Shown piece after piece: positions 31,799 through 55,284 of a stretch of 64,000 nucleotides of DNA. This DNA comes from Magallana gigas (lineage: Eukaryota). The stretch lies in the NCBI RefSeq assembly GCF_963853765.1, contig NC_088857.1:19344001-19408000 (forward strand). The letters run 5' to 3'. The notes beneath the pieces were generated by a model. That model worked only from the letters and a program-made list of their open reading frames with translations, searched no databases and had not been told where the DNA came from. The first letter of the stretch is position 1. Each line of letters begins with the position of its first letter. The position numbers were made by a program, and so were the translations under genes.

Positions 31799-34267
31799 TT
31801 AATCACTTTGATCTGATGAATCTTGACCAAAAGATTTATTCTCATTCTTAAACCTTGAAAATCTTTTCGCACCCGATCGATCGCGTTTCCAACTTTTCGG
31901 ATAGCGTTCTCTTCTAGGTTTTGATTCCTCGGATGACCTCGACTCCTCACTTTGTGAACTATCATGAGAACTCGACCCACTACGAAATTTACTTTTCCTT
32001 CTTAAGAATGGCTTTCTGGTCAACACAAACTGCCTGTACCGTTTGGATAAAACCTTCTCTAAATACTTTCTTTTCTTTATAACATTCTTTGGGATGATTG
32101 ATCCCGGTTTTTCGTCAGAGTTGTCTTTAGATTTCTTTCTATCATACCGATGAAGTTTCTTAACCAGTTTGTCTGTTTTGGACGACTTAAAATGGCCACA
32201 TATCCTAAGGTCTCTCCATAACATGCTGAAAAGCCTCTCATTTGGTTGTACCTTCTTAAATAATTCTTTCACCATATTTACCATAACCCGTTTGTAAAGT
32301 GGGTAAAGCCTCAGAGAGCAACTTATTTTCGGTACTTGTTTCATAAAAACATCGTCTAGTATCATGCTTAAGTCATCTAAATGCTGCATCACGTCAATTT
32401 TAGGTATTGTAGGGCCAACTAATAGTTCTCTTTGACGATTAATATTCCCCAGTTGAGGTACTCTTGATTTCGAAACAAAGTCTGTGTTTTCAGGGACATG
32501 ATTTTTAATATCACGAAAATGTTCTAGGTCTTTGTCGGAGGGAATTTCAATATTTTCAGTTAACGTACTTATGGTTTTATGGTTGACTTCATTGTTTCTT
32601 TTTTCAAATGGAATATCCAGGATTGGATCATTCCTTAGATTGTTAAATCCATTTATAAATGGACTTCTGAATCTATCTGAAAACGTGTTCGTCAACCATG
32701 GTGGAAGATTTCTTTCTATTGATAGAGGCGGTTCCGTGTGTCTGTTCCAGCGATTTGCTTCTTCTTGCCATTCAGGTTGTTCTGGTTGTGCAAATTCTCT
32801 AAACCGATTTTGAATATTGAGAGCATTTTCAAATCCCCCAAGTTGGTTTTGTAAGTTAAAGGCGTTTCCAAAGTGTGGAAATATCTGAGGATCATTTAAA
32901 TTTCTAGAAATATCGTTGACATTTCTTTGGTCGAGATTTGGTACAGAACCTCCGGGTATGATATTTTGGACTGCTGCCGATAAAGGTAGACCGGGGTTTA
33001 CTGGAGATGCAAGTGAGTTTTGTGGTAACATGTTTGGAGGGATAAGGTCTCGAACATTGTTATGACTGCCTGCAGTCTCAAATTTTTGAGATGGAGACCC
33101 AGGCAGACTGGAATGAATCTGTGAAAGGACACTACCGCTGAGAATCCAACTCTAAAATATAGTTAGTAAAGTATAAAATAGCTAAGATGTTCAGTTATTT
33201 TAGCCGAATTTCGACTGATAACAGCTTCTGAATAGTTTGATACAGTTGAATAAGGTTGAGCGTTTAAGAAATAATCCATCAGATCTACCTTAATATATTA
33301 GAGCTTGAAAATGTAAATGTTTTACGTTATCTATATGCAAAGATATTCTTCTTAAGGAGACTGATGTAGTATACAAATAGCTACGGCCGTCCACGCCCAT
33401 GATTTGCTTGAGTTGGTAATATAGGTGAGAGTAAATCAAGAGAAGTTTCTTCTTATATGTCAAAGTAAGTTTTTATAATTTGTCACGCAGTGCATGCAAT
33501 TTTTGTAAAGAAAACGGTTCAATAAATTTCGTGTGTACATTTATTTTATCATTAAGGAGAATACTCATAGCCCTTAGGCTATTTCATTTTTGAAGATTAT
33601 GCAACTAACAAAAAACGGATTGAGAATAACCCAACGAGATATTTTTTAAAACCATCACAGAAGCTTGAAATTCAATTCTTAAAATTGAAAATAAAATAAA
33701 AATATTGATCGACGTCAAAAAATATCATTAAATTATAATTGTAGCAATTGATAAAACATATTTGAAATTTTCAATTAAGAAAATCATTTTCTCCATGTAA
33801 CAGTAAACCGATCACAAATTAAAAGAAAAATATAGTTTCATGGATTTTATTTTTATAACAATTATTCTTTGCATCGCAAGGCTTTTAAATTCTAGTTATG
33901 TGTTTTCACTTAAAATACAGCAAACATCGTCACAAAAAGTCAAATGCATTAAAAAGCTGCAATTAGATATCTTTACTTTAGATTTGGTAAGGTTTCATGC
34001 GAAAAAAAAAATGAAACTTGAATAAAAGTAGGTACTTGTTTTTACAGTTACTGTAATGAAACCAAAGCACTTATACACAAAAAACTACGTCGTTATAAAA
34101 AAATTCTTAGATTTAACTACGGTTTAATAATGTGTTTGATTTGAAAAATATCATGGACTATGAATATTAGTTGAGTTTTGTCATTAGAATTTTAAAAAAA
34201 TATCTTAAACATCCCCCAGAAAAGCGTTTACAGAAAAAGAACTCACCAATAACAACACTGTCAACAT
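31799..34267 (-). CDS. Secreted low-complexity protein 1 (457 aa). Exons 34247-34267, 31799-33151
   Basis: MLTVLLL|SWILSGSVLSQ signal peptide split by a phase-0 intron; N/Q/P/F-rich N-half, K/R-rich C-half with Ser clusters; TATATAAA at 34307-34314. Confidence 0.85.
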
Positions 34268-34785
34268 CTTTTCATTTGTGAAGGTAATTAAAGGGACTAA
34301 CAAGCTTTTATATATCTACATTCTAGTGCAGGTAATTCATAGAATCCCCCTCAGTGAGCTTTATAACAGGCAATACATCACCGGTTTGATGTATGATCTA
34401 CCATAAAACTCCAGGTAAATTTTCTCTCAACGGCGATTCAATGAAATTTTATTAATTAAAAGAATAGGATGCATTATTGTCAAAAATCAGGAAATCAAAT
34501 TTGAATTTTAAATGAAAATAAAAACAAGGCATTTTTGCATTATATCTATCTCTTTCAGTCACATTACCTAATACGTTGGTGGTGGAAGAATAGATTTGAA
34601 AGCAACCAATTAAAACAAACAAATTCATACAATTGTCTTTGACTTAACAAATCACGTTTTATATTACAAATGCTAAAGCTTATACCTCGTACATGTAAGC
34701 ACTTTATATCATGAAATCGTCATTGTATTCTTCTACATTGATAATAAACAATAAACACATACCAGGTCATGAATAGAATTGAGAG

Positions 34786-35008
34786 GTACCTTGGAATCAT
34801 TTAAATTCGTTGGGGAAAATTTTCGTGGATTGTGAGCATTTTGCTTATTTGTGGGGATGTAATTTTGTGGATGCGTCGGTTTTAAGTTTCAGTCTGAAAA
34901 CTTCCTCTTTTAAAACAATTTTCGACGAGAATGTAAATTCGTGGAGGAGGACTAACCACGAATAATACGAAAATTGAGCCACCAGAAATTCTAATGATTC
35001 CACAGTAT
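34786..35008. mobile_element. Small MITE (TA-flanked, Tc1/mariner-like ends)
   Basis: taccttggaatcattt / aatgattccacagta inverted ends. Confidence 0.5.
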
Positions 35009-52401: not shown

Positions 52402-52531
52402 NNNNNNNNNNNNNNNNNNNNNNNNNNNNNNNNNNNNNNNNNNNNNNNNNNNNNNNNNNNNNNNNNNNNNNNNNNNNNNNNNNNNNNNNNNNNNNNNNNN
52501 NNNNNNNNNNNNNNNNNNNNNNNNNNNNNNN
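52402..52531. other. Assembly gap (N130)
   Basis: Run of N. Confidence 1.
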
Positions 52532-53700
52532 TACCGTATCGAGTTAGAAAATGAAAGTTATCTTAATACCTTTGTTATCATTTCAGTACATGAAAAATGT
52601 TTTGCATATCTGTCATTTTATTCACTATTAGAAGTTTTTTTTTCATTAAATATCTTATAAATATGATTAACACGTGAGTTTACATTTCAAGTTAAGCAAA
52701 TGAGCTATTGTTAATTTTTCATTTTTCATAAGAAATAATGTGATTAAGTAGTACCTATTTTTTATCTGAATAAATTCTTATGCATACAATAGTGAGTATT
52801 ATGGGTTTTATCATAGTTTTTTCCATCTTCGCTATCCAAGGGTTTACAATCCAATATGCTCCTCTTCAACAGTTGGCAGTTTAAACCGACAAAGTCAAAA
52901 CTCACGCTACGGAATCTGATTGGCTGCGAAGACAGGCGATCACAGGGAATCCACTAATTGGCAGTGTAGTTCGTTGTGTTTTCATACAAAAATTAAATGC
53001 AATCATTCTTACAATTTCAAAGAGACTATTATAAAATACGATAGTTAAATACAAATATATAGTTTTTCAATTATTCTTATCTTTTATTTTTTCCCACGAC
53101 CATTTCTTCTAATACCTCTAGATCATAGATGAAGATACGTGTTTTAGCTGCTCCAATTTAACTCAATCGCTAGACGGCGCTGTGCTATTTCTAAAAACAT
53201 TTGCTAAATATGCCCCTTTTGGCTAGCAAAGATTAGGAGTTCCATGGTCTATTTATATACGTTCGGCTGCAATATATACATATCATTGCATCAAGAAATA
53301 TTGATGTTATATGCTAGTAGATAAATATTTCATAAAACATACAGACCTCGATCAGTGTTAAAAGACGATAACTTGTAAAAAAATTTAAAAATGATATAGT
53401 TTTAACGCAATAAATGGCATTATATAAGCCCCACCCACCCCCTTGTGCGTACAAATGGCATTAACAGCCATTTAAACAAGGAAAAAACACAGTTGTTTGT
53501 TACCAAACACCCATCAAAAGTTCACACAAAGTAAAAAATTCAAGAGACATGTTAAATCTTATTGCCAAAAAAAACCACCCCGCTTCATAACTAAATAATC
53601 TGATTTCTAGAAATAATGCATTTTACATAATTAATATTTTGCAAGCTGAATTACTAAATAAGATCAAATGCAATTCTATGTAACAAAACTGAATTTTTTT

Positions 53701-55284
53701 CTAATGAATATAAACGGAGTATGGGATCCAGAAAGGTTTATGTATCCAGGGCAAACGTCTCATCATTGTTCTGTATTTCCATAATGGATTTTGGTACAAA
53801 GTTGTCCAGCTGCGATTTTTAAAGGGAAAATATCTGTAACTGACAACTCTATTGAATCTAGAATGTGATTTCTTCACATTTTTCTTACTTGATTGTCCAT
53901 AGACTTTGTGATTTCTTTTGAAGTTATTTTCTTCTTTGTTTTCGTTTGTTCTGTCTTTTTTCTCGTCTTTTTCACAATCAATGTTATGAAAGTTCTTATT
54001 GGAATTGAAACCTGATAGGGATTTTCTTTCCTTGAACGTTTGTTTTTGATGATCCAAAATGTTACCTTCTTTGATGTTTTGGGATTTTATTATATGTTTC
54101 CATGGAAAAAACAAATCTGGAGACGTTAAGTCTGTTTTTTCGGATTCATCTAGCTGAGTGGGGTATTTTTCTGTTTTATCCAAATATTTCTCCTCGAATT
54201 TGTTTGTGGTATCGTAGATTTTAGGCAAAATATAATCGTTAACCGCTACATGTGAATTTTGTGTTACTTTATTAATCTCCTTCGCTGGTTGATAAGAACA
54301 ACATAGTTCGCTTACTGACCACAGCAGTTTTTGAGAATTGTCCAAAGGAGCGAATGTGTCAAATCTATCAAAATACTTTGGTTGAGATTTGTTTCTGTAA
54401 AACATTCTTCCAAGAGTACTCCTGGATACCTCATTTGTAATACCGTGTGATTTTTCGGATATTGATGTTTGCCTGTTCTCGTCATAGCTTTTTTTAATTT
54501 CCAGAGGGTTTTCGTTTCGAAAATTCTGAACTTCCATATTTTTTTCATTCTTTATTTGCAAAGGAAAAATAGAGCTCAACTTAGGAAGACTCAGTTTTTT
54601 GTTCAGCCGAATGTCTGAGTGTCCGTCTGCTCGATGACTGTGGTCATCATCAGAATCATTGGTAAAAGTAATAGGTTGATCTTGCAATCCCATAGATAGG
54701 CCAGGAAGAACAGCATCCTGCTGCATTTTACGTTTGTGCAGAAAATCATCGACGCTGTTTACATTCAGTTGAAAACTTTGATAAACATTTGAAACTCCAA
54801 GAATCGGCGTATGATTTAACAGAACATTTAGAGCTCCTACCTGAAAGTTCATAGAATATTTTGGAAAAACTCTCATTGCAGTTACTCTATCAATTAAAAA
54901 TTACTGGTACTCAGAATTTTTTTAATAGATTTACAAAGTAGAAATTCACCGCTTCCATTGAAATGCATATCAAAATAAGTGGTAGAAAAACAGAAATAAA
55001 GATACAGGTAGTATAGAACTCATTATTTAAAGTAAATTTGTATTATAATTATTTTTTCTCTCTTATGAATATGTGATTGCTACGGAGCGTTTAATTGCCT
55101 GGTTTTGTTTGCAACAAAAGCACTAGAGATCCAATGACTCTATACTTTCGAGCATGTTGAGTAAATTATCAAATAAAAAATATAGATATTAATAAGCTAT
55201 TCATGGAAATTATAATGTATTCATATGTTTGCATTGTGCATGTAAAAATATGAATTTACTCACCAATAACATCAGATTTAACAT
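53701..55284 (-). CDS. Secreted low-complexity protein 5 (386 aa). Exons 55264-55284, 53701-54840
   Basis: MLNLMLL|VGALNVLLNHTPILG. The in-phase acceptor is tattctatgaactttcag at 54841-54858, so the ORF-track ATG at 54876 is intronic. K/E/N/S-rich body with a Trp-rich basic C-terminus. Confidence 0.78.

Follow-up and report, generated by a model that had tools for sequence, protein, structure and literature searches.

We conclude that a 64-kb stretch of the Magallana gigas genome (contig NC_088857.1, positions 19,344,001 to 19,408,000; hereafter the window) carries a cluster of five genes, G1 to G5, which is real, conserved and of a known kind, and which is undescribed in the literature we searched though largely annotated. 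All five lie on the minus strand, and each opens with an ATG and six further codons, which a phase-0 intron separates from a single large exon. Our preferred reading, to which we give a probability of roughly 0.5, is that they encode mantle-derived matrix proteins of shell, periostracum or cement, mostly of common descent. Shell-gene clusters of molluscs and cuticle genes of insects already display the general pattern; what is gained is no new principle but a testable list of five genes, restricted to oysters, whose products are candidate components of shell or cement, one of them with a conserved and uncharacterised helical domain, together with the correction of two public models, the chimeric K1QMG2 and the over-long start of RefSeq G3.

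A five-gene cluster with a common gene plan

The models, each composed of exon 1, donor, acceptor and exon 2 on the minus strand, are given here in window coordinates (nt, nucleotides; aa, amino acids; dN/dS, ratio of nonsynonymous to synonymous substitution rates).

34247..34267, minus strand: G1 coding exon 1 (MLTVLLL), ATG at 34267; donor GTGAGT, intron of 1095 nt
31799..33151, minus strand: G1 exon 2; Pro/Asn/Gln-rich N-terminal half, helical domain, basic Ser-rich tail ending DSSDQSD; precursor of 457 aa
32015..32434, minus strand: predicted five-helix domain of G1, conserved, with two invariant Cys (alignments, dN/dS, AlphaFold)
34307..34314, minus strand: G1 TATA box, TATATAAA; TATATA also upstream in the oyster loci L001 and L002
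38843..38863, minus strand: G2 coding exon 1 (MKATLAL), ATG at 38863; donor GTAAGT, intron of 983 nt
37158..37859, minus strand: G2 exon 2; Tyr/Pro/Asn-rich, four 16-residue repeats, S-x-E motifs; precursor of 240 aa
38911..38918, minus strand: G2 TATA box
45105..45125, minus strand: G3 coding exon 1 (MFAVVIL), ATG at 45125; donor GTAAGT, intron of 299 nt
43825..44805, minus strand: G3 exon 2; Asn/Ser/Phe/Gln/Pro-rich, almost no Lys and no Tyr; precursor of 333 aa
45163..45170, minus strand: G3 TATA box
49127..49147, minus strand: G4 coding exon 1 (MFALLLL; same peptide in locus L005), ATG at 49147; donor GTATGT, intron of 238 nt
47710..48888, minus strand: G4 exon 2; Pro/Asn/Gln-rich N-terminal half, Thr tract, basic tail ending SSSESYGD; precursor of 399 aa
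49201..49208, minus strand: G4 TATA box, kept in L005
55264..55284, minus strand: G5 coding exon 1 (MLNLMLL), ATG at 55284; donor GTGAGT, intron of 423 nt
53701..54840, minus strand: G5 exon 2; Lys/Ser/Asn-rich, basic aromatic tail; precursor of 386 aa; no RefSeq model seen
55318..55324, minus strand: AATAAAT upstream of G5, a possible TATA variant (putative function); same motif upstream in the orthologous loci L004 and L009
45763..46007, no strand: assembly gap 1 (245 N), intergenic between G4 and G3
52402..52531, no strand: assembly gap 2, intergenic between G5 and G4

The open frames of exon 2 run to 233–450 codons, with a GT donor and an AG acceptor at or near the frame start in every gene, and since the two N gaps fall between genes, neither interrupts a reading frame. 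These five co-oriented models stand where the first-pass annotation had placed them, and the promoter motif that it had seen 38–54 nt before the ATG of four genes is TATATAA, whose end lies 40 (G1), 48 (G2), 38 (G3) and 54 nt (G4) from the ATG. TATATAA is missing from G5, which has instead the AATAAAT listed above, starting 40 nt 5' of its ATG. When the window was scanned on both strands for ATG exons of seven codons with a strong donor (GT[AG][AT]GT), six were found, the five hydrophobic ones being exactly G1–G5; hydrophobic exons of any other length from 3 to 15 codons numbered zero to three each in the same scan. Seven-codon candidates for a sixth member, at 24189 and 25203, were rejected as they fall within introns of a neighbouring PABP-derived gene and have no large exon behind them.

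Two observations on the non-coding sequence may be added here. A GC-rich unit of 31 bp is present three times at 49747–49839, some 600 nt 5' of where G4 starts. The G2 intron holds, at 37927–38311, an element of about 385 bp that resembles a miniature inverted-repeat transposable element, its terminal inverted repeats of 32 nt being 91% complementary, and the G2 intron of Magallana angulata is 370 nt shorter than that of M. gigas.

Had these genes been recognised before? RefSeq holds G1 and G2 correctly and G3 with the correct junction, merely unnamed, so that the cluster can no longer be called unrecognised, as it was at first pass: the genes are real and mostly annotated already, but nameless. 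Our G2 model is identical, residue for residue, to XP_011419745.3 (M. gigas, 240 aa), RefSeq G1 in M. gigas has the 457 aa of our model, and the RefSeq proteins of M. angulata have 457 (G1), 224 (G2), 365 (G3) and 401 aa (G4), the last being one residue above 7 plus the 393 codons of exon 2. The seven-codon exon is likewise modelled in the M. angulata orthologue of G2 (XP_052692473.1, LOC128170732) and in the Crassostrea virginica orthologue of G1 (XP_022291979.2, LOC111103194); the literature gave no name, function or paper for either of these accessions or for XP_011419745.3. In M. gigas as in M. angulata, RefSeq G3 uses the same donor and has 365 aa, which equals our 333 plus 32 codons (45126..45221) that begin at an upstream ATG and whose frame runs through the TATA box, and we read this start as an over-extension that masks the predicted signal peptide. 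The old UniProt model K1QMG2, in which the C-terminal part of G3 runs on into the beginning of exon 2 of G2, is an annotation artefact. Together with the Logan/ENA open reading frames, none of which, among those listed, includes exon 1, this chimera bears out the warning that naive calling of reading frames loses the starts of these genes.

For G5, two other starts were considered. The ATG at 55308 is not conserved, and of the two orthologues only one has the in-frame ATG at 54876; since both retain exon 1 with its donor and the acceptor, the spliced start is preferred. For the cluster as a whole, the RefSeq models and the conservation in orthologues lend strong, if indirect, support to the predicted junctions.

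Predicted proteins and their conservation among oysters

A hydrophobic N-terminus appears in each protein only once exon 1 is spliced to exon 2 (KD9 2.4–3.1 versus 0.8–1.6 elsewhere) and is kept in orthologues, and G1–G5 are probably secreted, with a predicted signal peptide split by the intron. Their bodies are mostly disordered by composition, FoldIndex being negative in 68–100% of windows, which agrees with the first-pass description except in G1, where a region of about 130 residues is conserved (two invariant Cys in the alignments, dN/dS 0.13–0.16) and is predicted by AlphaFold to form five helices, at a modest mean pLDDT of 63.5. No credible match to G1 or to this domain was found in Pfam, a PDB sequence search, Foldseek or the ESM Atlas, and none of the cluster proteins has a Pfam match above cut-off. 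True repeats are confined to the four 16-residue units of G2 and the Thr tract of G4. The N-terminal halves of G1, G4 and G5 are near-neutral or acidic and their C-termini strongly basic, and S-x-E motifs number five in G1, four in G2, two each in G3 and G4 and none in G5, with no dedicated small exon.

Exon 1 is kept in at least three other oysters. In C. virginica exon 1 and the start of exon 2 read MSAVIIL/SFLFG in G1 and MPATLTL/LLCCG in G2, and other oyster relatives, with donors and acceptors intact, have MLTVLLM (G1, L001), (M)MTTTLAL (G2), MFALLLL (G4, L005) and, for G5 with the same donor and acceptor, MLNPMLL (L004) and MLTLMLL (L009); these relatives are probably other Magallana species. 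The terminal Leu of exon 1, which had been described as a common feature, holds for all five M. gigas genes but is not strict, as MLTVLLM illustrates, and the length of seven codons holds for the five but may be seven or eight in the G2 orthologue that begins ATG-ATG.

Homologues were found in oysters only, at 79% and 40–42% identity for G1, 57–84% for G2 and 63–91% for G5, and a full HMMER scan with G4 returned two clusters at 79% and 39%. The homology searches covered G1, G2, G4 and G5, were run exon by exon and had limited length and sensitivity, and within these limits they revealed no homologue outside oysters; for G3 the M. angulata orthologue is the only one seen. Within the limits of such searches, then, the cluster appears to be restricted to the oyster lineage. 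The exon 2 dN/dS between close relatives is 0.40–0.64 (0.54–0.64 for G5), indicating purifying selection in every gene, and the most distant oyster orthologues found are only 39–42% identical, in keeping with the earlier description of the genes as fast-evolving.

Synteny, which the first-pass annotation had proposed as a check, holds for G1–G4. RefSeq places G4, G3, G2 and G1 of M. angulata in this order on one strand, and the flanks of gap 1 are collinear there (99% alignment, 195 bp apart versus the 245 N). In C. virginica the order is G2-G1-PABP, as in M. gigas. The C. virginica G2 orthologue (L002, 13–2178) is intact and encodes 410 aa with expanded Gly/Tyr repeats and five EDSSES motifs, yet is absent from the called genes of that locus.

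Descent and probable function

Do the five genes form a single family? The first-pass annotation had claimed almost no mature-sequence similarity among them, and indeed no pair of mature regions among G1–G5 rises above shuffles. The signal regions of G1, G3 and G4, the three whose SQ ends had been noticed earlier, have 16–17 residues and an S/T-Q end. Near the N-terminus G1 and G4 both have L[IL]PxxM[LI]P; their C-terminal halves are basic and close with an acidic SSxxS[DY], and the same features recur in their distant orthologues. Exon 1 is identical at 14/18 nt between G1 and G3 and at 13/18 both between G1 and G5 and between G3 and C. virginica G1, with permutation p values (0.006–0.03) that are modest even before any correction for the 21 pairs compared. 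Because signal ends, exon-1 identity and the G1/G4 motif and tail are shared, G1, G3 and G4 are likely paralogues that arose by whole-gene duplication and then diverged. G5 is plausibly a further paralogue, while for G2 the case is one of position and intron, with no support from sequence. The single tandem family proposed earlier is thus favoured by sequence for G1, G3, G4 and perhaps G5, and not for G2. In general terms, the design of the first exon can expose kinship between secreted oyster proteins even when their bodies can no longer be aligned.

The modest p values are one of several points that weigh against our preferred reading. G2 exon 1 matches the others at chance level (4–7/18 nt), and a profile comparison of the mature regions was not significant (best hhalign E ~0.06). 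The linkage of G5 spans gap 2 and rests on this assembly, on orientation and on exon 1, and the ten Logan contigs checked for G2 were all unspliced DNA. Searches of papers with accessions and six peptide strings turned up no mention; nor was there a match in the shell-proteome supplements of PMC10543319 and PMC5379566, where gene ids were unmappable and sequences possibly not printed, or in a larval adhesive supplement.

Could the resemblance be confined to the leader? A cassette of promoter and 21-nt exon might have been copied locally onto unrelated or new frames, so that exon 1 is all they have in common, and it is true that exon 1 is alike in G1, G3 and G5 while their bodies cannot be aligned, and that exon 2 of G5 starts unlike the others. 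However, exon 2 supplies 10–15 of the signal-peptide residues, with the same length and the S/T-Q end in G1, G3 and G4, the motif and tail common to G1 and G4 lie inside exon 2, and beyond the TATA box no common sequence is evident, by eye, within 200 nt 5' of the five ATGs; we regard such capture as improbable. Still less do we favour five independent secreted genes that are neighbours by chance and convergent in intron position, a view for which the lack of mature homology and the deviating exon 1 of G2 would speak, as would the Drosophila class of genes with an intron at position 5, which persists after homology reduction (PMC1626468). Against this view, all five neighbours have the same intron position, phase and strand, exon-1 identity beats permutation in several pairs, and signal-peptide introns in the animal sets surveyed are mostly phase 1 and near the cleavage site (PMC1626468).

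Under our preferred reading of matrix proteins with mostly common descent, G1, G3, G4 and probably G5 would be tandem duplicates of one two-exon ancestor, and G1 and G2 would have been in place beside the PABP gene before the split of Magallana and C. virginica. What stayed recognisable, as the low-complexity bodies diverged past alignment, would be the leader exon of 21 nt, its short promoter and the remainder of the signal peptide at the head of exon 2. Splicing would join the halves of the signal peptide, and cleavage after residue 16–18 would expose, in G1, G3 and G4, an N-terminal Gln that could become pyroglutamate. A Fam20C-type kinase may phosphorylate the S-x-E sites, the Thr tract of G4 may be O-glycosylated and the tyrosines of G2 may be cross-linked oxidatively; the Pro/Asn/Gln/Phe-rich halves may self-associate, and acidic partners may be bound by the basic tails. 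Charge would then drive co-assembly of the proteins, which would be secreted together as a mixed organic matrix, with the mantle as the most likely source and shell, periostracum or cement as the destination.

The same gene history could also have served another secretion, such as the cement of the larval foot, mucus, or the coat of gametes or eggs, rather than shell or periostracum, and this has an appreciable, though minor, chance of being correct. The missing match in the searchable shell-proteome supplements fits it; the basic aromatic tail of G5 and the Tyr-rich G2 suit adhesives, the Thr tract of G4 suits mucins (a weak Mucin match in P0059 has E 0.011), and the absence of the C. virginica G2 orthologue from the called genes of L002 could mean narrow expression. 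That the larval adhesive supplement likewise gave no match counts against it.

Parallels in other animals and neighbouring sequences

The first-pass annotation likened the cluster to the SCPP genes of vertebrates, whose introns are all phase 0 and which descend from SPARC/SPARCL1. Like the oyster genes, SCPP genes are clustered and encode secreted, disordered proteins, rich in Pro/Gln or in Ser and acidic residues, with S-x-E motifs (in the oyster, in G1–G4) and a large variable exon, and both sets are seen by structure more than by sequence. In SCPP genes, however, exon 1 is non-coding and exon 2 carries the entire signal peptide (Gasse et al., 2015, PMC4373244), and there are several small coding exons, whereas the oyster genes have two coding exons with the intron inside the signal peptide. 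With the transcription start predicted from the TATA box, 38–54 nt before the ATG, there is no room for an intron in the 5' untranslated region and hence no non-coding exon 1 in G1–G4; instead of several small coding exons there is a single coding intron, with which the RefSeq lengths concur. Neither Pfam nor the homology searches, which returned oyster homologues only, gave a link to the SPARC family. Membership in SCPP is ruled out by gene structure, as the intron after codon 7 splits the signal peptide, and SCPP is at most a functional analogy.

A closer parallel in gene plan, again by analogy and not by membership, is provided by the single-intron cuticle genes of Drosophila and other insects. 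Among Drosophila genes with signal peptides, 88 have a phase-0 intron at position 5, of which 91% are single-intron and 43% are annotated as cuticle proteins (PMC1626468), and insect cuticle genes with a single phase-0 intron are described by Nielsen and Wernersson (2006; PMC1626468), clustering being reported in Tenebrio. As the oyster cluster probably does, these genes encode secreted structural proteins; like it, they have low mutual identity and a lone phase-0 intron in the signal peptide, although it follows codon 4 in insects and codon 7 in the oyster, and the oyster genes have no sequence relation to them and no chitin-binding domain (no Pfam match). If promoter and 21-nt leader were a portable secretion module set on unrelated low-complexity frames, they might mark co-regulated matrix genes throughout the oyster genome and correspond, among molluscs, to the position-5 class of cuticle genes in Drosophila; we think this reading improbable. 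Were it true, a scan for the leader exon would list biomineral and cement proteins that homology searches miss.

Within molluscs, lineage-specific shell-matrix genes are described as commonly standing in tandem clusters, both in bivalves and in gastropods (Takeuchi et al., 2016, PMC4759782). The oyster cluster resembles those of the Pinctada shematrins and N19 (PMC4759782) in being lineage-restricted, tandem, fast-evolving, secreted and of low complexity, and differs in having no detectable homology to them, in not being Gly-rich in M. gigas and in that its members cannot be aligned with one another. Two marks of molluscan repetitive low-complexity domain (RLCD) shell-matrix proteins, a predicted signal peptide and a low-complexity or disordered body, are present here.

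Downstream of the cluster, on the minus strand, are a PABP gene (~7280–11380) and a PABP-derived gene with repeated RRMs (~17980–24700); in C. virginica PABP begins about 5.5 kb after G1, and PABP-derived copies were not seen in between. Two similar multi-exon coding segments on the plus strand (~56950–57520 and ~63150–63700), containing …GARVMFFFN… and ending …VICDWSSGKGK-stop, apparently represent a duplicated gene divergent from G5; they have no Pfam match, and the region aligns in other oysters. Frames at 21501–22759 (plus strand) and 14343–14732 (minus strand) resemble, by eye, fragments of long interspersed nuclear element (LINE) retrotransposons of endonuclease/reverse transcriptase type.

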